Shown here: positions 16,910 through 33,160 of the stretch, one piece after another
How positions within the stretch are numbered: the first letter of the stretch is position 1
Layout of the letters: every line of letters starts with the position of its first letter
Position numbers and translations under genes: made by a program
Notes under the pieces: generated by a model
What the model was told of the DNA's origin: nothing
The model's input: only the letters and a program-made list of their open reading frames with translations
Database searches by the model: none
From: Dimorphilus gyrociliatus
Taxonomy: Eukaryota; Animalia; Annelida
Direction: 5' to 3'
Length of the DNA stretch: 64,000 nucleotides
Assembly (NCBI GenBank): GCA_904063045.1
Contig: CAJFCJ010000005.1
Coordinates: 2,309,988 to 2,373,987, forward strand

Positions 16910-19900
16910 TTAAACCATTCCATCATCTTCCTCTGCCTTAGACTCTTGTGGAGCAGATTCGGCTGCAGGCGTTTCCTCGGTTTTTGGCGCTTCTTCAGTA
17001 GCCGGGGCTTGTTCTTCCTTCGTTTCTTCGGATTCTGGTGCTGGCTCTTCTTCTTTCTTTTCTTCAGTTTCTGCTGTTGGTTCTTCTTCTTTCTTCTCTT
17101 CAGTTTCTGGTGTTGGTTCTTCTTCTTTCTTTTCTTCAGTTTCTGGTGTTGGTTCTTCTTCTTTCTTTTCTTCAGTTTCTGGTGTTGGTTCCTCTTCTTT
17201 CTTTTCTTCAGTTTCTGGTTCTTGTTCGCCTGCTACTGGAGCTTCCTCTGTTTTATCACCTTCAGCAGGTTCTTCTTTTTGTTCGCCTTCAGCTGGTGTT
17301 TCGTCTTGCTTTTCTTCACTTTCTTCCTTCTTCTCCTCAGCTGGAGCATCCTCTGGTTGTTCTTCTGGTTTTTCTTCTGGCTTTTCTTCTTCAGTTGGAG
17401 CCTGTTCTTCAGCCGGAGCTTGTTCACTTTCGACAATCGGTTCAGCTGGCTTCTCTTCAGAAGCCTCTTCCTTAGCTTCTTCCTCTGCTGGTTTTTCTTC
17501 CGATGCTTGTTCTGCTTCTTCTTTGGGGGCTTCCTGATCTGCTTCTACGGCGGCTGCCTCCTCTTCAGTTGGTTTTTCAGTAGAGTCACCTTCTTTTTGA
17601 GCATCTTCTGAAGTTTGTTCAGGTGTAGCCTCTTCGGTTGCGGCGGTTTCCGGTTGCTGAAAATAATGAATTAAGAAAAAGAATTAAAATTAATTTGGTA
17701 TTCATTACCACAACTTCCTCAGAAGTTTCTTGAGTTTCGTTTTTTTGTTGCCCTTTCATTTCCTTAACTTGTTTTCTAGCCATCATACCGTGGAATCCAG
17801 CCTGGATTTTCAAGGCTGCCTTCTCAGTTTCAGGATCTTCAAGATCGATATCAATTTCCTCTTCTTCTGGTTTTTGTTGCTCTTCCGTTTGTTCAGCATC
17901 CTTATTTGCTGCTGCATCCTTCATAGACGCAACCTTCTTTCTAGCTAAATGTCCTCTCATGCCAGACTAAATTTCGGATAAAGAAAATCGAGATTTATTA
18001 CAAACATAACCGATTTGAAAGATAAACTTAAAATATTACTTGGATTTTTGTAGCTGCATCAACTTGTGCGGGGTCGTTAGGATCAAATCGAGCCATTCCA
18101 TCATCAGTGGTCTCCTCTTTAGCCGCTTCTTCAACTTGTTCTTCACCAACACGACCATCTTGATTAGACTCCTATATTATAATTAAACAGGAGGGAGAGG
18201 GAGAAAAAAAATCGAAATTATACTATTTGTATGTAAATTAAATAATATATAAAGCAAATTTGTTTCTTTTTTTGTTTTGTAGTTTGTCATTAAGCGGGGG
18301 GACGGTAACAATAAAATGAAAATTGTTTGTAATGATCAAAAATAAAGAAAAAACAAAAAACTAATTAGAATAAAAAAAATCTATAAAAATAAAACAAAAT
18401 ACAAGAACTGAAGGATAATTAAAAAGCTTTTAAAAATTATATATATATATATAATCTATATATAGATATATAATCTATATATATATATATAATCTATATA
18501 TATATATATATATATAAATTTATATATATACATATATAAGTGAAATAAAGTTCATGCCTTGTCTAATTAAAAAAAAAGTCTATTAAAGAGATGCGCCCAA
18601 AATCGATTACATGTCGCTGTCGTGAAAGAGGGAAAAAGAAAGGGGAGAAATGGTAAAGAGAGTAAAGAGAGTGAAAAAAGGCAGGGAGAGAGAGAAAGCA
18701 AGAGCGAGTTTGTATGTGAGTGAGAGGGGAAAATAGTATGAGGAAGAATAGCGTTTTAATTTCTCCACTGTAGGAATTTTGATTTGCAAAAATAACAAGG
18801 TTGAAATAAGAATAGTTTGAGAAAAGGAATACAATATATAATGCAGATGTCGTTGTCTCAGGTTATCTATTTCTCTCTCAATTAAGGAGTGAGTTTTCTT
18901 TCTTTGTAACTACTAAATGCAGCTTCCCTTTCCCCATCCCATCAAATTAACAGGATCGGTTGTTGTTTTCTACCTTTAAAGATTTCATCTCCTTTCGTGC
19001 TAAAAATCCTTTATAACTCGCTTGGATCTTAATAGCAGCTTTTTCCGTTTCCGGATCGTCCAGGTCTATATCGATTTCCTCGGCTTCTTCTACTTTTTCC
19101 TTCTTTTCTGCATCATCAGCTACGTCTGATTGTTTTTGTTCAACATCTTCATGATGTTTTTCGGCATTTTGCTGTTTACAATATCGACTTTCATACAATT
19201 TTTGTGCAGAGAGAAGTGTTACAAACAAGTATATGGATAATAATGGTGAAAATGGAAGGGCTGATGAAAGAGAAGGGGGAACAAAAACAAAATGTATGCA
19301 TAAATGGGAAATAGCATAAAAAGAGGATAAATACGAGAAGAACAATATAATCATTTATTCGTTTAGGAATTGGGCCAGAAAGAATAGAATAAAGAATACA
19401 ATGTTTACACGTAAAAGATAGTTTCGATGTATCGAACGGATGGATTTATAGTTAGGACCTGATACGAGAGAAAGCCATTTAGGCAAAAGGGTCGATTATA
19501 TTAACGAAACTCGCCTAGGGAACAGAATAAAGAGTCGGTTCCCCGCTGGAATTTCGACCATAGAATAGTCCTTAGTCAAACGATAAAAAAAAGGACGACA
19601 AAGTTCCTTTTAAAAATTGTTTGCCTTTTTTTTTTAAATAAAACAAAGCAAACTCAAAAAATAAAAACTAATAGACATACAACAACTTTGAGTATTGATT
19701 GTTTTTTATATATATATACTGTATATACTATATAGTATATAAACTAATCAATAAGGTCTAGAGAGAAGAAACACATCTAATTTAAATACCTTTTATATCT
19801 CTTTTATTTTGCCTCAAAACCCATTCCAGTTGGAGAAATATATAAATATCTATTTATATATATATTACACAAATATTACAACTTAAACATAGTTCTTTGT

Positions 19901-22900
19901 TTCTTTTAGCGTTGTTTAAGCATTGCGGAAAAAAAGTAATAGTTTGTTTTTAATGTAAAAAATATATAGTTCTCTTTTACAAAATGGAAAACGGTATGAT
20001 ATTTAGAGAGAGAGAGAGAGAGAGAGACGTAGATGGAGGGGCCATTCAGAAATATAAGGAAGAGATAATCGTAAAAGTAGGAGGAAGTGGAGGACAGTTA
20101 TTGATTGTTTATTAATAATACTATTGTTATTATTCAAATTTCATTGATTGATTGATTGGTTGATTGATTGATTTGATTGATTTATAGTTTGTTTATTTGT
20201 TCTTCATTGTTTTTATTCGTTTTCTTGTCTAAATACAGTCTGGAAGAAGATAAAGTTTTCCTTTTTTTTTCTTTTATATGAAGATAAAACGTACAGAAGA
20301 GAAGAGGAAAAAAGAGTAAGCTGTGTGTGATCATGCATAACTACGAGATCCCGTGTAAACGACTGATGCTATTTTACTTCTTAGCACTACTATTTTCTCC
20401 TTGTTCGGTTTTCTTAACGGCATTATCACTCTTCTTTGCTCCGCCTTTAAAACCTCTAAATTTCGATTGAATCTTTAGAGCAGCTTTCTCAACTTCTGGA
20501 TCCTTTAAATCAATATCAATTTCTTCTTCGACCGCTCCTACTTTGTCCGTATCCGATTTTTTACCTGCTTCCGCCATTCCTTTTTTGTTTGTATAGAGAA
20601 AAACGAATAGTATCGATTCAACAAATAAATCTAAACGCAATTTTACCCAATTTAAGTTTTAGAAAGGGAAAAAAGCGTCTCCTTTTCCTAATACACTAAA
20701 ACGACTTTTAATTTTGTACCTTATCTCTCCGTACACGTACGCGATTATGCACTAAAGTCAATAAATCATCGGATAAGTCGCACGCAAATCAATTAGAACG
20801 GAAACGAACTAGAAACGCTGGCTATTCAGCCAATATAATTAAAAATCTGCAACGTATTGAATAAAAAACCAAGCTATAAACCCTATTCCTGCCAATAATC
20901 TAATGTACATCAAAGAAAACTGTCAAATTATTTCACTATGAACAATATCCTATATAATTAATACAATTATGGGTAGCAATAGCACAAAAAATCTGTAGTA
21001 AGGCGGCAAGGGCCAATGTAAAGAGTGACGGGAGCGATTTAAGCTACAAACAGTCGCTCAGCTTGGTTGCTGTGACCTAAAGCTAAAATGACGAACCTCT
21101 AAGCAACTAGCGACATTTGTCGATCGTGTTCGCTAATTAGAAATGATCAATAAGTGGCATTAGTCGTGGCGGGCGATCGCTTAGTAATATAAGCCTTTAA
21201 ATACACCTTTTTATACTGAAAAGGCGTCTGATCGATCGAAAAAGAATTTCCCTATTACGAATACCAGTACAGTAGAAATAGAGAGCGTAGCATCTGCATA
21301 TATATATATATATATATATACAGTATATATATTTTTTTTTAAAAGAAACGCTCTCGGCGAACTCATTGCTAAGGGACAAGGACGATAAACTATATATATT
21401 TAGAAAGAAGGAAGAGTATTGAATCGATTGGTTTTTTAGAAAATTCTCAAAAGCTTTTCAATAATGCAAGTTGCCATTTTTATTAAAATCGTTACAATTT
21501 CTCTCTGAAATTGCTATTGGCAATATAAGTGAACCTTTAAAATCAATTTTTTGTACCATCTTATCCGCAACGCCGCTCAATAAAACCGCCTTAATCAATT
21601 TTCACATAATAAAACATTTAGAAAGAAAACAACTCTAGTTGTGCAAGTTGGTATGCTGGGGAAAAAAGAGACAGGGTTCTTTCCGTGCTCGTCGAGGATA
21701 AAGGGAATGAATAGATGAGAGAAGGAGAAGGAAAAACCGGTAGTAAAGCGCATCAATCAATTCCTACTCCGAATTATTCCTATTGCTCATAAATAACATT
21801 TGCGTTTTCTCTCTTTCAATCTCGCTTGTTCCTTTTCGACTTTTCGCCTTTTCGACTTTTCACCCATTTCTCTTAATATGGATTTAATAATGCAAAAATT
21901 GTGCTGGCGAACAAACATACAAACTAGTCTCTAGGATAAGCCGATTAAATTTATTTCTAAGATATATTAGGGACTTGAAAACGGGCAGGCAAGTTGAAAG
22001 AGAAAGGGAAAAGAGAGAGAGAGAATGAGAGAGATAGACAGACAGAGAGACTGACAGAGAGGTATTGGGGAAAAACGGATGTAAAATTGGTTAAAGAAAA
22101 AAGAATTTACATAGCTTAGGAAAAGGAATATGTAAATTAACCATTTCGATCATCCCGATCATCTTTATTTATTTTTACGCTCGACGCCGCCTCTTCATAT
22201 TAATGCATAAGTAATAATTTGAATAATGCTAGACGTTCATTACATTGATTGAGTTCTGTCGTTAAGCCTCTTGCGTCTAGTTACGGCATAAACTTAACAA
22301 TTTTTTTAATCTATAAAATCCCCAATATAGACATAAAAAAGAGGGGGTGGGAAAAGGAAAGAAAGAAAGAAAGAGACAGAGATACAGAGAGGGGAAAAGA
22401 GAAAGAGAGAGTGACAGAGAGAGAGAGAGAGAAATAGGAGAGAAAATTGAAATAATGGACAAAAGGTAAGAAATGTTAGGCGTTTTCGCTTCAAAAGTTA
22501 ATGAAAAACAAACCTGCGTACGTGTACAGAGTCAATAAACTGCCTAAATATCTATTAAATACGTCTAAATGTACATCGAAAATAAATTTAACTATATAAT
22601 TATTAAATGCATTATAGAAATAATGCACTAAGATAAACCTGAGAAAATTATACTTACGTATTCTGAACTATCGAATTGATAGATGAAGAGTGTGAGAGAG
22701 AGAGAAAAGGAATGCCGATAGAGCTAACAAATCACCTGTTAGACGCCGAGTAGTGAATGACGCTTAGACGTCGGTTCTGCAACCAACCAGACACAACGCT
22801 CGTAGCCGTTCTGCTTAGAACGCCACACCTACGCGCAATAGAATAAACGAGCCAAACTTTGGTATACTTTGTTTTTGTCATAACCTTTTAGACAGGAGAA

Positions 22901-24256
22901 GAGGAGAAAAGGATAGGGGATGTTTAAATATTGTACCGGCAGATGTTCTTAGCTGTTCTATTATGAAAGCTTAATTCTTTAAGAACGGACGTCTCTCTAA
23001 ATTTTTTTTGACAAAATCCGATTTTACAAACGAATAGCATTATCTTAAAGAAGTGGGAATGCATAGTTTTTTTTTGCTCTCGTTTTTTTTTCACTTGGCA
23101 AGTTATTAAAACCGGAAGCGTAAAAAGAAAATGAAAATTACAGATTTTACAAACTACCAATTATTTTACTAATTATCCATCTAACGATCGTATGTCATCA
23201 AACTGGAATGGGGAAGATGGGAGAAAGAGGCAATTTTTCGAGAGAGATAGCTTTTAGCTACGGGGGCGTTATATATATTAGTTATACAGTAATTCATTCG
23301 TGCAATCACAAGATGGCGTTTTTGTGTGATTAATTAATTGGTAAAAAGCTAACTAAATACACTGAAAGTACAAAAAGACAAAATGTTACTTAAGGGGAGG
23401 GGCTGAGGAAATTTTTTCACATAATCGTTTATGATTTTTTAATCCAATTAAAATATCAATTAGTAGGGTGAAAACAGGATGGAACCAAAAAGGGACAAAG
23501 TTAAAAAATCCACCTACCTCATCACCTTGAGCCTGTTCTTCGTCTACTTTATCCTCAGACTGGATTTTAGCTGTTTCTCCGTCAGTTGAGTCTACTGGTG
23601 CTGGAAAACAAAACATCTATTGTACGATTGGTCTCTTTCTGTGTAGTTACTATTCACCTTCTGGTTCAGTAACTGGTTCAACATCTGGTTCAGCGTCGCG
23701 TTGAGAGTTTTCCGCTGCCTTACTCTCCCTATAATAATGATTTTTAGGCAATTAGAAAGAGAGAACGAGGGATGGGAGTGACAGACGTACTAATCTCATA
23801 TATTAAAACGTACCTGAGCTCTTTAACAACCTGACGATCATGATAGCCTCTATAAGAAGACTGAATCTTCGTTGCTGCTTTTTCTTGTCGTTTAGTGTCA
23901 ACAACCTATAATAAACACATGAATAATTGTACATAGAAATACATTCTTTTTCTGAATACTAGTTATTTGTGTCCTCTCCTTTCGAACGAAGAGAAAAACA
24001 ACCAAATAAAGGTAATATCTCCTAATAGTACTCTCACATACCTTCTTAGCGTTGTATTGTCTATACGAAGTCTGTATTTTGAGCGCTGCATCTTGTTGTT
24101 GTGGATTGCTTGGATCAATATCTGGTTTCTAAAAGGATTAATGAAAACAATAAAGATAAAAATATATATTCAAAAGTTGTATTACCTGGAAAGCTTTATT
24201 ATTATATTGACGATCTTCTAAAGAGGCTGCCTGAGCAGCAGGGTCTTTTCCGGTTT
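16910..24256 (-). CDS. Shared core of a multi-IQ calmodulin-binding protein (Sp17/igloo/neuromodulin-like): 9 exons, 5 IQ motifs, Glu/Pro/Ala/Lys-rich tail
   Basis: Exons 24256-24186, 24128-24042, 23905-23814, 23728-23658, 23600-23518, 19171-18974, 18171-18040, 17966-17709 and 17656-16910 total 1739 nt, start in phase 1 and all have GT-AG junctions. IQ motifs: KIQTSYRQ, KIQSSYRG, KIQASYKG, KIQSGMRG, KIQAGFHG. Two are preceded by EEIDIDLxDPETEKAA acidic segments. Confidence 0.88.
17039..17218 (-). repeat. Coding tandem repeat, 5 x 36 bp (PETEEKKEEEPT)
   Basis: Five near-identical units CCAGAAACTGAAGAAAAGAAAGAAGAAGAACCAACA inside the last IQ-locus exon. Confidence 0.92.
18439..18538. repeat. 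(TA)n-rich compound microsatellite with repeated TAATCTATA units
   Basis: Direct inspection. Confidence 0.85.
20374..20577 (-). CDS. Intron-nested 67-aa single-IQ PEP-19/neurogranin-like peptide
   Basis: MAEAGKKSDTDKVGAVEEEIDIDLKDPEVEKAALKIQSKFRGFKGGAKK...SAKK*. It has an acidic EEIDIDL-DPE-EKAA segment plus IQ, an upstream acceptor (cgtttag, about 20634) and a downstream AATAAA on the minus strand near 20212. Confidence 0.78.
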   Translation of the reverse strand: MAEAGKKSDTDKVGAVEEEIDIDLKDPEVEKAALKIQSKFRGFKGGAKKSDNAVKKTEQGENSSAKK

Positions 24257-24899
24257 CTAATAGAGGAGAGGAAAGAAAAAAAAAACCAAAAATAAAAACA
24301 ATGAATAGATAATTTCAAATGAAAATTAATATCTTTCTCTTTTTGTTTTCCCTTTTTACTGTAGAAAGTATTATTTAATGTATCAATCCAATGGATAATT
24401 AAGCTAATTATAATAATAAAGGCCTATAATTAATTTATACAAATACAACAAATACACATACAAGAACACCAACAATACTGAATGTTATATTTATGTATAT
24501 ACTGTATATAGAATCTAGCTATATTTAAAGACATGCTAGGCCTAACATTTATAATTGTGAATATCGATCATGCAATTTGTTCACAACAAAGAATATCAAT
24601 GAACAACCTAGAAATAATAATAATAATAATATTTCATTCTTTTTCTCATGCTATAGGCCTCTCTGGAGACTTGTAACAAACTATACTGAATAGGCAAAAA
24701 TAAAGAAAGAGGGGAGAAATTATACATAGTTATTTTAATGAATGTAATAATTTCTAATAAAAATATATATATCTTATATATTCAATATCTATTTTTGGCG
24801 CTTGTTTTTTTTTTTAAAAAAAAAAAGAAAAGAAACTATTAATATGAAACTCTTTCTAATTATTACTATTACGACAGTTATAAATTATTACTATAATAC

Positions 24900-25113
24900 C
24901 ATTTTTAGTATTACTATTCTTAATTGGCCCATTTCTAGAGTTCTCTCCTAAAATTGACATACTATTAGCATTATCATCCGTATGCTTTCCTAAAGCCATT
25001 GACGTCGGCGATGTTGTAACATCTCCTCTAGTTTCTTTCGACCATGAACTCTTTCCAGCTTTACTTATTGTATATCTTCTCGTAAACATACAAGGACATA
25101 ATGCTTGTCCCAT
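24900..25113 (-). CDS. Alternative first coding exon C of the IQ locus: MGQALCPC lipidation motif
   Basis: The ORF starts MGQALCPCMFTRRY. Its phase-1 donor (AAT G|gtatta) at 24900 fits the core acceptor, and 214+1739 nt is divisible by 3. Confidence 0.7.
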
Positions 25114-25553
25114 GTTTAACAGTTCTTTTTTTTATCTCCTCTCTTTCTCTTGTAAAAGTTGAAGGTATAAGCTATAAGTCTCGTTTCGTATTATCCTTTA
25201 AACTACGGTCAATAGATAAAGAGGATAAAGTAGCGACAAGTAGAGAGAGAGAGAGAGGGAGGCAAAACAAGAGTTGAAAGATTACGAAAGAAAAGTAGAT
25301 AAGGATTCTACGTTTCTTTCCAAAATAATGCTCTCTTTGGACTTTTCCAATAAATTTTATATGTTTTAATTTCTTCAAACAATTCTTTTATCTTTAAAAG
25401 ATAATAGTCCTTCCTTTTAAAGTGTTCCTCTTTCCTTTACTTAAGTAAACTGATATTAGTCGCGAAATATCAGCAAAATAAAGGATCTTCTTTTCAATCT
25501 TTTATCATAAAATATTTTTATTACCAATGTAGAGCAGAGGTGAGAGAGAGAAT

Positions 25554-25587
<34 letters not shown>

Positions 25588-27016
25588 ATTATTCAATTCT
25601 TTTTCTTTTCTTTCATATACATATAGATATATAGATAAAAGATTGTGCGATGTCTTCTCTTTTAGTAAATTCTGTGGTAAAGTTCGTTATGAGAAAAAAA
25701 AGAAAAGAAAATTATTCAATCAACTCAGTTTATTTCGTATCCTAATTCTTTTTTTGTACAGTAACAAAATTTTGGTGTGAAAAATATTGTTATAAATGGA
25801 ATATGAGATAAAGAGAGATATATCTTGTGCTTGGAGGGTGAAGGAAGAGGGTAAAATAGACAGAGACTGAGAGACAATGAGGGGAAGGGGTGAGAGGAAA
25901 AGAGATAAATTAAAGAAAAGAATGAGTAAGTAAATAAATAAGAGAAACTATGTATGACAGAAAAGGTGAAGATTGTTATAAAAGAGATATTTTGTTTCAT
26001 AACAGCCTAGTAAGTGATAAGAAGTGTTTCCTCCCAATATATCTAATATTGTTATATGTATGCATATTTTGCTAAAATCAATATTTTACGAGCTAGTACA
26101 GTCTAGCGTTTATACTTGCATTTAACAGTGCAACTCAGCATGTCAATTGCTAAAATCTTAGGGTTAGTTTACAACCTATATATACATGTATACTTGTATT
26201 TAATTATTGTAATTATAAAAATATCTGTTTTTTAGTTTACTTTGCTAAAAAACCTGTCTCATATACACAAATACAAACACACATACACATGTATAATGGG
26301 AAATAAAGAGAGGGAGGGAGAGAGAGAGCGAGAGAGAGAGAGAAACAAACAAATAAAATGTAATATTTTGTTTCTTTTCTATCAATGTCTCTCTTTCATA
26401 TTTTCCAACGCTATATAAAAAAAATTAATATGCCACCGGTATCATATTTAGTTAATTTATTTATAAAAACCCTATTGAATTCTGAATGGCAAAATATTTT
26501 TAATGGCACTTTTTTGCATATAAATAGTTTACTTTATAGTTTTGTCAATTACATTATACTTTCTTTAGATAATAAACTGTATACAAAGCAAACCTTAGGA
26601 AATCTCTTATCACTTTATAGTTAGAGGAAAACTAATTATTATAAAGAAGAGAGTATTTTTTATTAATTATATCTCTTTGAAGACTAAAGGGTGATGGAGA
26701 GAGAAAAAAGGTTTAAACAAAATTTATATACAGCGTTCGTATATATAAATAGAAAAAAAAGAGAAAATGGATATATTAATTTTTTTCTAGGAGAACAAAT
26801 AGATATGGTTGAAGAAAAAAAAATTATACTAAAGATGATAGAGAGATGGAAAGAAAAGGAAAAGAATATAAGAAGAAAGAATAAGAGAAAAAGGATAACC
26901 TTTTTCTCCTTTTTTTTTCCTCAAATATAAATAGAAATTAATGAGTTGATCTATCTAAGTATTAAACAAAAAAAAACCTCCTAAAAACATAAAGGGAAGA
27001 ATTGAAATAAAACTTA

Positions 27017-27216
27017 CGAATGCTATCTCAATAAAGCTGCGATATTAATGCGAAAAGTTTTAGCACTCTGACGGCTACGCTAACCAATTGATTGGTAAAG
27101 GTATACCAATAAATTCATACATAGTTAAAGGTAGAACGAATTGTTATTACAATGTGAATCGCGTTGATGTAAAGAACAAATACCGCATATAAACAGGTAA
27201 AAGCGAGTGACGTCAC
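27017..27216 (-). promoter_or_regulatory. Intronic promoter-like island, probably for the MGQALCPC isoform
   Basis: GTGACGTCAC (CRE) at 27207-27216, inverted CCAAT pair at 27084-27095 and a minus-strand donor c|gtaagt at 27017. Confidence 0.45.
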
Positions 27217-27294
27217 CATCCTCCTCCAGGTGTGCATATATGCATAAATATATGTGTATGCATACGTACTAAGATATATACATTGTATACATAT

Positions 27295-27329
27295 ACATAC
27301 ATACATACATACATACATACATACATACA
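27295..27329. repeat. (ACAT)n microsatellite
   Basis: Visible tetranucleotide array. Other simple repeats: (GA)n near 8320, 20005, 25545; (TA)n near 18440-18535, 27450, 46660; (TG)n near 16620. Confidence 0.9.
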
Positions 27330-27441
27330 ATGCACACGAAAAGAGAAAGAGGTAGTTTAAGCAAACACTTAAGAGGGAAGGGCGGCGTCGCAAGCGTCAC
27401 TTTTATTTTTAGGTTGATTAAATTATTAAATTTGATATATG

Positions 27442-27479
<38 letters not shown>

Positions 27480-27955
27480 CATCCTTTTTTGATAAAGTGA
27501 TTGACTTATCAAAAGGAAAAAAGAACTTTAAAGTCTAAAGCCTTAAAAGAAAAAGATAAAGAAAGACATTTTCAATTCTTTTTCTTCAACTTTTTTAATT
27601 AACTTTCCTAAAAGTTAAATTAAAATTAAATTAGGTCTTTCTTTGTTGACAAATTAATTAAAATATAACAATTATACATATACGATTATATATGCCTAAT
27701 TTCATTCAAGCAAAAGCTACTCTTTATTAGTAGTAAATTTTAATTAGGGTTGGGCAATAAGACTACGAGGTAAAGAGATAAATATTTGGGGGAATAGGAC
27801 GTAAAATTTTGGGAATAGATTGATTTAATAGAAATCTCTCACTTTCGGTTCGTTCATTAAAGTTTACTAGATGGCGTATTAGAGCGTGTTAATAGAATAC
27901 AGTGCACAAAAAAAGCGCTGTTCTTCTATAAACATACAGCTATTGTTTCACCCAC

Positions 27956-28592
27956 CATTCTCGTCTCCTTTACTGACCACGCCTTCATCGTCCGTTGCTT
28001 GAGTTACGATAATACCGATTTTATTGTTCTTTTCGGTAATATCATTTTCTTCGTCTTCTACATGCTCCCCATCAAATATCCTAGTAGAATGCTTATGTTC
28101 TTCCTTATCTCCTTCTTTAATCGTTTTATCCGTTTCGATGGTTACCCTTTTTTCTAATGTATCTTCATCGTCGCCTTTGGCTGTTCCCTCAGTTTTTATA
28201 ACCTGATGAACAATCGTTTCCTTACAAATACTCTCATCGTTTCCTTCCTCTCTTATAGTAGACTTCAACTCCTTTTCGCTGACAAACGATATTACTGTCT
28301 TCGACCCTTTTGCATCATTTATTCTTACTTCTTCCCCTTGCGAATCCTTGTTAACCGGGTTCCGTATAACGGTCACCTCCTGCGCTTGATTAGGTTTCTC
28401 TACTTTTCCATCTTCTTCAACATTCTCAGAAGGTTTTTCTTCTTTCTCATTAGTTGAATCGTTACAAATTTCTTCTACCGGTTTATCAATTTTCTCCTGT
28501 TTGCCGGCTTCCTCTGATTTTATTTGATCATCTTGAGGTTCGTTATCGTTAATATTCTTTTCATCAGCCTCTTTACTTCCCGTACAACCCAT
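27956..28592 (-). CDS. Alternative first coding exon B of the IQ locus: MGCTGSK lipidation motif plus acidic linker
   Basis: The ORF starts MGCTGSKEADEK. Its phase-1 donor (AAT G|gtgggt) at 27956 fits the core acceptor at 24256, and 637+1739 nt is divisible by 3. Confidence 0.78.
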
Positions 28593-30335
28593 ATTAATTT
28601 TCCGAAGTTATTACTAAAAACAGAAAATTACAAAAACTTGCCAGTATAAGTTCTCTGCCGCTCAGACTGCCTGCCTTTATGTTCTTGTAACAGGTGTTTC
28701 GAATAAAAAAAAACTTTTGTACAGAAGTTAGAATCCGCTCATATAAGTCAGTTTTCTATAATTTTTTGTTTTTGATAAATAGATTCTTTTCAAGGATAAT
28801 CTATCAAATAATCTTCTTTAGTCAGGAGATTTCAATAAAAATTTGTAATCTCCCCAAAATTACTTGCTATTTAAACTTTGATGAATAAGAATAAGGCTGT
28901 AAAACTAGTTATAAAACAAGACAGCACCAACAAAGTGCAGTGTGCAACTCGCAGCCGGCGGGGAAAATGATAGTAAACACTCCTTGTCTGACCAATCCGA
29001 GGCGCCACGCCTACCACCGCTTGTCTCCTCTCTTATCGCATAAATCACTTTAATTAGGCCTAATGTTTGCTCCAAACTTCCGTTTGTCTAGTTTAGATGT
29101 ATTAAAAAAAAAAACTTTTTCAACTCTCACTGCCTCCCTTCTTCTTTCTCCTCTCCCCTTTTCAATCTCTCTCTCACTCTTTCTCAATTCCTTATACTAT
29201 TAAATTGACATAAACTATATACTGTATGTATATATATATATATGAAAAGAATACGAATAAAAGAGGGAATGGGGCATTTTTTTTAACGATCCCGTCAAAT
29301 TCGTATCGTCCTTGAATAAAAAAAAACTCTATTTTTACAACGTGTTGGCGGCTATATGTTACGAAATCAATTAGTAATTGTTATAATAACTGTTAAAGAG
29401 CATTGGAATGAGGGAACAGAGGGAAGAAAATTAAGATAGGAATGACAGAAGGAGAGAGTAGGAAGATAGATTAACATGCAGTTAATACAAGTATACAAGA
29501 ATATATATATATATATATATTATTCTCCTCCTTTACTTCTTTCTCTCTATCTATCTATCTATCTCTCTCTCTCTCGCTCTCTCTAATCTCTTGGCTTTGT
29601 TTTATAATTATGGGAAAAAGAGAAATTATCGTATAGAGTTCTTATAAATCGTCTCGTTCTATTTTTCTTCGAAAAAGCAAAAGGATAAGACGTTGATAAA
29701 GAGGAGTCAGAAGTTGATTACAAACTAAAAGTGATTTAGTGCCGCTGTGTTGATTCCTCAATCGTCGTGGTACTCAAAACAGTTTAAACTAGAACAAAGA
29801 TAAATGGCAAATGGTTCCATTTTATCTTCTCTCCACTTCTATCTTTATATTCGTTTCGAAAAACATTTGAGATTACGTAACGCCAACGTTTTAACCCGCT
29901 GCCCTTAATCCCTGCAACCCCCATCTTACATTCGCAGATGCTTCGTATAAATAGTTGCACATTGGACGTAATATGAATCTTTCATTTATATTAGCCATCA
30001 TCGTAGAGTTAGACTTTATGGGCTTGCAGATGTAAAAAAAAAAGAAAAAAAAAAGAAAGGCCTCTATTGTGCTGGCCTCTGTCGTCAGTTTACACCACTT
30101 AAAACATTAAACCAAAAAGATTTGGGATTTTAGAGAATAGAATAATAAAACGAAAAATGCCTTTTATCTTAGGTTCTCCTTTTACATTTCGTCTTATGGT
30201 ACAACTGTATAGAATTGTATACTCTAAAATAAACACATACAGTATCTAGATAAACAATATCTGGTTACCGAATATTGGACAACACCATTTTTGAAACAAT
30301 ACAGAGAACTTTGTAATATAGTAAATTGGACTTAC

Positions 30336-30596
30336 GTTTTCTCTCCTCTAATAATTTCTCGAAATATAATGCTGAAAATGCGCATATATCTTGTGGCTGA
30401 GTCCTTAGCACCTCTCTTGCCAATCCTTCTAGCAATGCTTGGAAACCGCGTGGGACTCGAACTTTACCCCTTACATTCGTAAAGGGTACACCCGCTGATG
30501 GACTTCTAATAAGATGTAAATATCTCCTTTAAATTGACTATATTTTCTCGCCAATTGATATACTCACGGATATTGTACTGATTGATTCTCAGACAT
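30336..30596 (-). CDS. SPA17: Alternative first coding exons A of the IQ locus: Sp17-type RIIa dimerisation/docking domain (30596-30568, 30505-30336)
   Basis: Translates to MSENQSVQYPSPSAGVPFTNVRGKVRVPRGFQALLEGLAREVLRTQPQDICAFSALYFEKLLEERK, matching the Sp17 N-terminus pattern (PFSN..R(I/V)PxGFxxLLEGLxRE(I/V)LRxQP..FAAxYFExLL). Junctions are CC|gtgagt, attag|A and C|gtaagt (phase 1). It is absent from the ORF track because the large exon has no in-frame ATG. Confidence 0.85.
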
Positions 30597-30739
30597 TATT
30601 CAAACTACATAAAAAATATAAAGGAAATCAGTCGTTACGAAATGTTTTTGGAAATTTAATTAAATAATCATTTTTTTTTATTTATTTTACATGCTAGTAT
30701 TAAAAATTGTACTTACATAACAAGTAACTTAATAAGTGA

Positions 30740-30814
30740 CTTAGAGTTATCACCGTTGCCAAGATAATGTTTGGCCAAAAACAAGATTCTGCCGCTTTGC
30801 AATACGCATGCGTA
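30740..30814 (-). promoter_or_regulatory. Putative promoter of the RIIa isoform: RFX X-box-like site and NRF1-like palindrome
   Basis: GTTGCCAAGATAAT at 30755-30768 (perfect GTTGCC half-site) and TACGCATGCGTA at 30803-30814, upstream of a non-coding exon donor (AT|gtaagt, about 30716). Confidence 0.45.
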
Positions 30815-31064
30815 GGACAGGTATTTTATAAACTGGTGTAAAAAATTTCGCAATATTATTAATATTCGCGCCAACTTTTCGAATAATTACTATATAATTA
30901 ACGCAAGTTAATTCACGAATTTTGTGTTTTTATCATATTATAAAAAACGTCGAAATACATAATCCCTTTAAAAGAGGTTACATTGATTTATAAACAGTCA
31001 CAAATCACACTAAAAATAGACAGAGAACGTCTTCCGTTCCAAAAAAAAACTATCAAAAAAAAAA

Positions 31065-31866
31065 TCAGTCATTTCCCTTCATTGTATCAAATTTCGACTT
31101 ATGATTCTTTGCTGAGTAGATAAAATAGGTTAGAGCTTCCTTTTCATTCACTCTAATTGAACGAAAATGCCTGGCAACTGACTGTGAAAAGAGAAAAAGA
31201 AAACAAAATATACACACGTGTTTTAATATTTAGATTTCAAACGCTTTTATAAAAAAGAAAATCTCTTATCGATATTTTCAAAGTTTTTAAAATGAAAATA
31301 GAAAGAGAAAGAAGAAATTCGACTACAAAATCAAAGAGATATCCTATAAACTTACGTCAGCCAGTTGAGATTTATTGCTCCCTTGTTTGATTGGAAGTTT
31401 AAAGTGACGTCGGTAACGTTTTAACATATTCATTGGCATGCTATTGAAGTCGACCTATATAAAGATAATTGATAATTTGATAAATGAAGAGGATAGGGAA
31501 CTTGGGTGAAATGCTATGAAAGATAAATACCACAGAAATTTCTTCCCTCGTGTGCAATTCGCTCTCTTTTCTCTTCCTTTTTACTCGGACGTTTTGGATC
31601 ATGTTTTTGTGGTGATCACAAATGTAGATGTGTCCGTGCTAAAATGATATTTGTAACGTTTACTTAAGGATTTACTTTATTATTTAAAGAAAACAACTTA
31701 CAGAATTGTCAATATTCAACTTCAAACGTTTTTGTAAAGCTTGTTTCTGTATACGCTTATTGTATACAGCATTACCAGCCGGCCGACGGCAATTCCTTCC
31801 ATCGTCCGTTAGGCAACAATATTGAACAGATGACCTCTGCTCTTCAGTACGAGAGTAACCATTCAT
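31065..31866 (-). CDS. SAP30: Sin3-associated protein SAP30/SAP30L, 4 exons
   Basis: [74 protein letters not shown]. All introns are phase 0; stop at 31065-31067. Confidence 0.93.
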
Positions 31867-33160
31867 ATCCCTACAAATATATGTCTTTGGATTAACATTC
31901 GATCAAGGAATAAGCAAACAACAATGTGATTATAATAGAAAATATTATTCAATTACGATCACGTATAGAAAAGCTTTAAAAACTTTCGTAAAAATAATTG
32001 TTTACCGTAGTTAGGATATAATTAAGACTGAATTTGGTTTGTAGTTATTTTTGTGCAATTTTCTGGTTAGTACGTTCCCTGATCGTTGTAAATCGCTCAA
32101 AAACCAAGATGCTAAACCAACTAGAATTCTAAACAATATGGCGTATGAGAGAATCCTAAATGACGTTATCTATTTTTAGAAACAAGGTATTTCCCAAACT
32201 TGAGGTAGAAGCTCCGACTAAGCTATTAGTGGTCATTTTTTGTTATGAGTAGTAACCACACTAATTCCTTGACCTTTTCTGTATCGTCGATAGGCTTTTA
32301 AAGAGATTTGGAAAAAGAACATATAAGAAATACAATATAGCCTACATACATGTGAACATATATTATCGGAAATTTAGCATTTGCCATTAATAAAATGAAG
32401 TATTAGCAATCACAAAGGGAAAGAAAATTTAAAATAGAACATTCTGTCAAAATCGATTACTTTTAAGTAGAGCGGCTATATTTTTGGATTATTTTGATAT
32501 TTAAGAAAGATATATAAGTTGATGCTATATTCGTAATTTGTCAAAAATTATCGATATTTCTCGCCTTAAAATAAAATGTAAAGGAAAGAAGAAAGAGAGG
32601 AAAAGAAACAAAGAAAGAATAAGATAAAACTCTTCTTTTTTCCCAAACTTAAAGAATGTTAACAATTTGATGTAACCTTATTTCTTTATTTATGAAAGTA
32701 TATCTTGTCTATATAAAGATCTGTGAAAGAGAAGAAGAAGAGATGGGAAAAGCAAACGGAAAAGATGTATAGGAAAGTGAACGAGAGAGAGAGAGAGAGA
32801 GATCTAGTGAAAGAACAAAAGAATTATTCTCATCTCTTCCTACCTTACATAGGAAGAGATGTAAGTTTTAATAGATGAAAGGCCGAGACTGAGACGAGTA
32901 GCTAATAAAATATAATATAAACTGGTGGAAAACGACATTAATATAATCTTATCATCCTATACACAGTCTTTATCCCCTTTTTAACTATATGAAGAGAATG
33001 AAATAAGGCGTATACAACCTTACATATAAATTTTTATATGTTGTTATATACTGTATATAGAGATAGATAGATGGATATTGATGTGTAAAATTCTGCAGCT
33101 GTATTATCTCTCAAGTAGTTTATACTTTGTAACTAATAATAAAATAAATTTTATCTATAA

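Follow-up and report, generated by a model that had tools for sequence, protein, structure and literature searches.

Vertebrate SPA17, a dimerisation/docking (D/D) protein of the R2D2 class, is ~150 aa long and carries an N-terminal RIIa domain and one IQ motif. It is axonemal, with a fold tied to motile cilia, and is conserved across metazoan phyla; its extended D/D domain comprises residues 1–75, and in the crystal structure the EDRxYNNxxF strand is part of that domain (PMC8339350). Alone it binds AKAP18 weakly, at 9.6 uM, compared with 82 nM as a heterodimer with ROPN1L; alternative acylated heads receive no mention in this main paper on SPA17 evolution and structure (PMC8339350). We describe here a locus on the minus strand of a 64,000-nt stretch from the annelid Dimorphilus gyrociliatus (assembly GCA_904063045.1, contig CAJFCJ010000005.1, positions 2,309,988 to 2,373,987; this whole stretch is called the window, and positions are counted from its first letter). 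At this locus an SPA17-type RIIa head and two heads starting with Met-Gly (the MGC and MGQ heads; MG heads in general) appear to be alternative beginnings of one protein core rich in IQ motifs.

The window protein shares with vertebrate SPA17 the N-terminal RIIa domain with its flanks VPF.N...RVP.GF and EDR.YNN..F, and an IQ motif preceded by acidic sequence; in the PDB, its IQ region matches the Sp17 chains of entries 9FQR and 8J07, which we take to be axoneme structures. It differs in being 645 aa long, with five IQ motifs and an acidic tail of 248 aa. Arthropod igloo (igl in Drosophila, a GAP-43-like calmodulin-binding protein) shares other features, namely an MGC-type N-terminus and repeated units of the form DIDLxDPE..KAA.KIQ..FRG. 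An 86-aa exon of the core matches the predicted igl of Pycnogonum (P0128) at 3e-15 pairwise and at 1.7e-20 in the library search, and P0128 adjoins an 'Igloo isoform A' cluster in the ESM Atlas. The RIIa head and EDRxYNN flank were not seen in the arthropod entries sampled. This similarity, at the level of the repeats only, suggests that igloo is orthologous to the window core.

The third group for comparison is that of the calpacitins, PCP4/PEP-19, neurogranin and GAP-43, which share with the window gene an acidic segment directly before the IQ motif (window versus PEP-19, PDB 2N77_B, 1.4e-05). The acidic segment of PEP-19 tunes the calcium on and off rates of calmodulin. The vertebrate calpacitins are separate small genes with a single IQ motif, whereas no exon of the window gene matches Pfam Neuromodulin_N (PF10580) or Neuromodulin (PF06614) at E<=1; judged by its domains, the window gene is GAP-43-like in working at most, and not a member of the GAP-43 family. 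An earlier note on this DNA, made from the sequence alone, had proposed that Sp17-like and igloo/GAP-43-like proteins are isoforms of one gene here; RIIa and MGC heads do sit on one core that contains igloo/PEP-19-like units, but the GAP-43 part of that claim finds no counterpart in Neuromodulin domains.

SPA17 has been studied in cilia, in sperm and as a cancer-testis protein, and igloo, GAP-43, neurogranin and PEP-19 as neuronal calmodulin regulators; neither body of work cites the other. Our full-text searches turned up no paper on acylated SPA17 isoforms or on a shared SPA17/igloo locus, and none naming both 'igloo' and 'SPA17'. The arrangement, which the note had thought undescribed, is thus apparently unpublished as far as we searched, yet it is already present in automatic annotation, in RefSeq isoform series of molluscs, amphioxus and jellyfish, and is not peculiar to this genome.

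Alternative first coding exons and their junctions

Rebuilt exon by exon from the sequence, the locus is one transcription unit with alternative first coding exons. We think it likely that it represents a single SPA17 gene that has no fewer than two alternative promoters and first coding exons, three being the probable count, and that each of these splices to the phase-1 acceptor at 24256. RNA evidence was taken from sample X3 (apparently the same species, most contigs being at least 99% alike), sample X4 (a coral metatranscriptome) and samples X1/X2 (two files from a diverged relative). These RNA data are assembled contigs, which show presence and not absence, and contig depth is a poor measure. 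The features, with the evidence for each, are:

30717..30769, minus strand: non-coding leader exon of the RIIa transcript, donor 30717, 5' end undefined (X3 contig, 53 nt past 30604)
30568..30604, minus strand: RIIa transcript exon with the ATG at 30596 (MSENQSVQYP), coding part 30596-30568 (X3 joint 30568>30505)
30336..30505, minus strand: RIIa (dimerisation/docking) head exon, phase-1 donor 30336 (Pfam RIIa, X3 loose end, Owenia identity)
28950..29113, minus strand: block of high conservation 5' of the MGC exon, candidate core promoter (97% identity to the relative's contig L001)
27956..28592, minus strand: MGC head coding exon (MGCTGSKEAD..., 212 aa, acidic), phase-1 donor 27956, leader running upstream (junction contigs, codon-position bias)
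27018..27281, minus strand: non-coding exon upstream of the MGQ exon, donor 27018, 5' end undefined (X3 joint 27018>25671)
24900..25671, minus strand: MGQ head exon, acceptor 25671, coding part 25113-24900 (MGQALCPCMFTRRYTISK..., 71 aa), phase-1 donor 24900 (X3 contig, conservation against the relative's contig L004)
23518..24256, minus strand: five common exons (24256-24186, 24128-24042, 23905-23814, 23728-23658, 23600-23518) with the EDRQYNNKAF flank, IQ1 and IQ2 (404-nt X3 contig)
18974..19171, minus strand: cassette exon of 66 aa, an acidic-IQ unit with IQ3 (X3 loose ends; IQ Pfam 3.9e-07)
16910..18171, minus strand: last three exons (18171-18040, 17966-17709, 17656-16910) with IQ4, an acidic-IQ unit with IQ5, the tail and the stop (frame; IQ Pfam 8.4e-07; PEP-19 match)

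The three first-coding units end in phase-1 GT donors at 30336 (RIIa), 27956 (MGC) and 24900 (MGQ), the break falling after the first base of a codon in each, and the common phase-1 acceptor at 24256 is an AG preceded by a long polypyrimidine tract. Joined to the nine downstream exons, the RIIa, MGC and MGQ heads open frames of 645, 791 and 650 aa, each with a single terminal stop; the donors, the in-frame acceptor and the product lengths that the note had given were all reproduced. The leaders of the MGC and MGQ exons contain 6–12 stops in each of the three frames, so that upstream exons cannot read into either, and the heads are therefore mutually exclusive in protein, as had been proposed. 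A scan of 24257-32500 for other MG-type heads found one extra open reading frame (ORF) only. This ORF, 46 aa at 29924 on the minus strand (MGVAGIKGSGLKRW..., MGVAGIK), lies between the RIIa and MGC exons and has phase-1 GT sites; it was rejected, having no myristoylation consensus and only background RNA depth. A TGACGTCA site near 27215 was also considered as the MGQ promoter and was ruled out, as an RNA contig reaches further upstream.

The junctions RIIa>24256 and MGC>24256 are demonstrated, the latter in three genotypes. In X3, a 404-nt contig of depth 2684 corresponds exactly to the five common exons, running from 24256 to 23518 across four GT..AG joints, and ends on both sides at branches of the assembly graph. 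On the RIIa side, the loose end at 30336 consists of the first 30 nt of exon 24256; the joint 30568>30505 (depth 1064, GT..AG, minus strand) leads further upstream, and the 53 nt that an X3 contig has beyond 30604 match 30717-30746, followed by GTAAGT, which makes them a leader spliced to 30604. On the MGC side, the loose ends at 27956 are the start of exon 24256 in X3, X4 and X1; the X4 contig, of 722 nt, continues for 657 nt beyond the junction, and X1/X2 contain the complete junction in a 60-nt contig of depth 712. The agreement of three samples makes a chimeric origin of the MGC-24256 contigs unlikely. The downstream core varies too: X3 loose ends at 23518 go both to 19171 and to 18171, so the IQ3 exon 19171-18974 is a cassette, and through it every head also occurs in a form that is 66 aa shorter.

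Transcription extends to the MGQ exon, which is covered by an X3 contig (24901-25538, depth 89, versus 13-45 in introns) that ends within one base of the predicted donor 24900; beyond it the depth is ~1.5. The joint 27018>25671 (X3, depth 43, GT..AG, minus strand) sets the real 5' boundary of this exon at acceptor 25671. Of the three junctions that the note had proposed, 24900>24256 is the one not seen; that the MGQ head is nonetheless joined to 24256 we regard as likely. Annotated isoforms of the source genome were not found in the protein collection, where it is represented only by ORF-style calls (P0151, 214 aa).

Some X3 contigs diverge from the window, at 28433, 26509, 24485 and 29179, into loose ends of 148 to at least 255 nt that match nothing in the window; the point at 28433 lies inside the MGC exon and not at a GT. 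These four loose ends may reflect differences between haplotypes, chimerism of the contigs or trans-joined sequence.

Constraint on the heads and domains of the core

A relative, represented by contigs L001-L004, allowed constraint on the two MG heads to be examined, its ORF calls P0152 and P0153 showing 80% identity to the MGC exon and 72% to the MGQ ORF, respectively. Between the MGC exon and L001, mismatches are distributed over the three codon positions as 19/19/68, the sole indel is of 6 nt, and the donor is identical. The MGQ exon forms an island of 74% identity to L004, against ~35–40% for its flanks in a forced global alignment; here mismatches by codon position are 12/5/26, the indels are of 3 and 12 nt, and the ATG context and donor are conserved. 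These patterns indicate that both heads evolve as coding sequence and keep their frame relative to a phase-1 donor. On the 5' side of the MGC exon, the 164-nt block 29113-28950 is 97% identical to L001, while the leader just downstream of it is 80% identical; this block could well be a core promoter dedicated to the MGC transcript. In the protein collection the long, 212-aa MGC head turned up only in a close relative.

The RIIa head gives a strong match to Pfam PF02197 (30504-30337: E 9.3e-16, 57.7 bits where the cut-off is 22.4), which bears out the domain call that the note had made for 30505-30336, and both flanks of the extended D/D domain are present (GVPFTNVRGKVRVPRGFQ ... EDRQYNNKAF). 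The nearest full relative of head plus core is the Owenia fusiformis protein P0260, 60% identical over 167 aa that run across the RIIa/24256 junction and both flanks. The acidic-IQ unit matches, in the PDB, Chlamydomonas radial spoke protein 23 and PEP-19 as well as the Sp17 chains mentioned above (8.7e-04). On the RIIa match, the Owenia identity across the junction, and the IQ and Sp17 matches together, we identify the gene as the SPA17 orthologue, in a long multi-IQ form.

The core was predicted to hold five IQ motifs and an acidic tail, and does so. By pattern, the IQ motifs are at residues 254, 279, 396, 456 and 511 of the 791-aa form; three exons give IQ Pfam scores over the cut-off and a fourth gives a weak one, and the fifth IQ is split over two exons. 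Two PEP-19-like acidic-IQ units ('IDIDLxDPE') stand at residues 380 and 495 of that form, and the acidic segment E-E-x-D-I-D-x-x-x-P-E-T-E-x-A-A directly precedes the IQ, as in PCP4/PEP-19. The body is low-complexity and disordered, and its tail is 39% Glu and rich in E/A/P/K; as a side observation, the composition of the tail is BASP1-like, a resemblance only.

The two MG heads were both expected to be lipid anchors. MGCTGSK fits the PROSITE myristoylation pattern PS00008, a pattern match only, and has Cys3; MGQALCP fails the pattern through Pro at position 7. The MGQ head (MGQALCPCMFTRRYTISK) has Cys6 and Cys8 and a basic run, and in this it resembles GAP-43, whose N-terminus, MLCCMRRTKQ, is palmitoylated.

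The same head swap in other animals

Searched against 1.8 billion representatives, the 86-aa exon gave 1049 relatives, 150 of which were listed. Many of the relatives are long and repeat the acidic-IQ unit as many as 26 times; among the 150 matches listed, 13 have the RIIa motif and 17 the EDRxYNNxF flank. The long multi-IQ form of SPA17 occurs in cnidarians, flatworms, molluscs, annelids, nemerteans, hemichordates and amphioxus. The same searches also found proteins that start with MG and lead straight into the SPA17 flank without a RIIa domain, and names, accessions and N-termini identify MG-start and RIIa-start proteins as isoforms of the same genes, in consecutive series (X numbers in the following lines are isoform numbers, not RNA samples):

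Biomphalaria glabrata: RIIa in X2 (XP_055866569); MG heads in X1, MGAAVLC (XP_055866562), and X3, MGTKFSKF (XP_055866570)
Haliotis rufescens and H. rubra: RIIa in X1 and X3; MG head in X2, MGGKLSRL..KRRK (H. rufescens XP_048254403 for X2, XP_046353038 for X3)
Mytilus trossulus: RIIa in X1 and X3-X5; MG head in X2, MGGKFSRL
Ruditapes philippinarum: RIIa in X1, X3 and X4; MG head in X2, MGNNFS
Branchiostoma lanceolatum: RIIa in X1 (XP_066301496); MG head in X2, MGSCSSK (XP_066301499)
Rhopilema esculentum (jellyfish), LOC135684955: RIIa in X1; MG head in X2, MGGLLSN

The linked arrangement that the note had suggested looking for in other spiralians is thus found in Biomphalaria, Haliotis, Mytilus and Ruditapes, and Biomphalaria has exactly three heads, one RIIa and two MG, as in the window. 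The point where head and core join is the same 'ETG' residue in all of these species but Branchiostoma, and it corresponds to 24256; the Branchiostoma MG isoform joins further downstream and has no EDRFYNN segment. Because the swap is found from jellyfish to molluscs and amphioxus, the RIIa/MG architecture appears, on these protein comparisons, to be older than the cnidarian-bilaterian split.

The MG heads of other animals are short (17-70 aa) and mostly basic, whereas the MGC head here has 212 aa and is acidic (59 D/E vs 31 K/R). All the MG heads seen across phyla keep Gly2; residue 6 is Ser or Thr in the majority, most heads continue with basic clusters, and several have Cys. One further MG head, MGAILTTVCPCL, sits on a core very like that of the window in P0066, a transcript-derived ORF filed under the apicomplexan Siedleckia; the likeness of its core to the window gene and to Owenia suggests that P0066 comes from an annelid, perhaps the host of the parasite. 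Separately, the short heads of the mollusc proteins P0179, P0181, P0127 and P0182 (MGGKLSRL..KRRK, MGGKFSRL..KKR) resemble what we take to be the myristoylated basic N-terminus of vertebrate BASP1/NAP-22 (MGGKLSKKKK); we draw no more than a resemblance.

Rival readings, function and origin

A number of our own observations weigh against a gene with three heads, two of them lipid anchors. The 24900>24256 junction is absent from all RNA contigs examined, a weak negative given that assemblers drop minor paths, and the MGQ depth of 89 is only ~2-6x the intronic background. The first ~30 nt of the intron past the MGQ donor (24867-24899) are nearly as conserved as the exon and have an in-frame 3-nt indel, and an 85-aa ORF that reads through the donor is open both in the source species and in the relative; this conserved intron start could be a splicing element or part of a micro-protein. 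The head depths in X3 (~1064, 376 and 89) fall well under the 2684 of the common exons, and given this shortfall a further first exon outside the stretches examined is possible. MGQALCP, as noted, does not fit the myristoylation pattern. Finally, we infer lipidation, localisation and calmodulin binding of the window protein from its sequence. Several of these points would be accommodated if there were only two heads, the MGQ exon being a separate minor transcript, either non-coding or encoding the read-through micro-protein (MGQ...IYNCRNSNN). We consider this unlikely. The MGQ contig stops at the predicted donor, which, together with its phase, is conserved despite the 3-nt and 12-nt indels; Biomphalaria has a second MG head on the same core, and P0066 combines an MG..CPC head with a core closely related to it. 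The missing junction would be a low-ratio connecting path beside a 2684-deep exon, which is the kind that assemblers remove, and for that reason we treat it as not refuted. It was not found in JGI metagenome contigs either, where the control junction 24186|24128 gave only chance matches of 20-24 nt; the organism is thus missing from those contigs, and this negative carries no weight.

The heads could also be real alternative N-termini that anchor nothing, yielding soluble, untethered calmodulin-binding isoforms that lack RIIa. The failure of MGQ against PS00008, and the length and strong acidity of the MGC head, so unlike short basic anchors, speak for such isoforms, as does a case for lipidation drawn from sequence; the conservation of Gly2 in every MG head seen across phyla (MGGKLSRL..KRRK, MGGKFSRL..KKR, MGSCSSK, MGCTGSK, MGGLLSN), along with the Ser/Thr, basic clusters and Cys described above, speaks against them, and MGCTGSK not only fits the pattern with Cys3 but resembles what we take to be the dually acylated N-terminus of G-alpha-i. 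We rate this reading as improbable. As for the core itself, a 4.3-kb intron that holds a PEP-19-like ORF and a conserved region (both described below) separates its two blocks, and one might suppose that the IQ/acidic exons 19171-16910 are a separate igloo/PEP-19-like gene, fused to SPA17 in our model only. The contigs lead us to reject this: those of X3 pass from 23518 straight into 19171 and 18171, the X4 MGC contig continues past the 27956 junction for longer than the 404 nt to which the five common exons add up, and orthologues in many phyla are single proteins with RIIa and many acidic-IQ units.

For one gene with exchangeable heads, the following working may be proposed. By analogy with SPA17, the RIIa head would attach the body to axonemal or AKAP scaffolds through their amphipathic helices; the 'AKAP docking' is here probably docking in axonemal complexes, because SPA17 alone binds AKAP18 weakly and needs ROPN1L (PMC8339350). 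The MGC head would be N-myristoylated on Gly2 and palmitoylated on Cys3, placing the same body on membranes, and the MGQ head would act as a Cys-palmitoylated, basic, GAP-43-like membrane anchor. Given its PEP-19-like acidic-IQ units, the body may do more than store calmodulin passively, as the apo-CaM reservoir that the note had proposed would. The MG isoforms retain the EDRxYNNxxF strand, since it is the common exon that encodes it, and the strand may have a function of its own, perhaps oligomerisation.

If a single ancient gene does make both kinds of protein by promoter choice, it would be a natural experiment in which an identical calmodulin-binding body is routed to axonemes or to membranes; it would account for the junk names of such isoforms in many genomes ('triadin-like', 'abnormal spindle-like', 'dentin sialophosphoprotein-like'), and it would supply a concrete hypothesis for the origin of lipid-anchored IQ proteins. 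In mouse, neurogranin adjoins Spa17. Human NRGN, SPA17 and SIAE lie within one 1.3-Mb segment (PMC4642301), and zebrafish nrgnb has been named spa17 (PMC9415131). We raise, as a tentative and rather doubtful idea, that a single SPA17 locus of the cnidarian-bilaterian ancestor made a poly-IQ body with either a RIIa or a myristoylated head, and that igloo, maybe neurogranin and PCP4, and possibly GAP-43 arose by subfunctionalisation from separate transcription units of that locus. We link this idea to a head-less PEP-19-like ORF that still lies inside the window gene. The ORF, of 67 aa (MAEAGKK..., 20374-20577, minus strand), is located within the 23518>19171 intron and consists of a single acidic-IQ unit with a weak Pfam IQ score of 17.5 bits; perhaps it is made as a fourth product, from a promoter of its own. 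Upstream of it, the intron stretch 23346-21718 shares 72.5% identity with the relative over 1743 nt, an unusual level for an intron at this locus.

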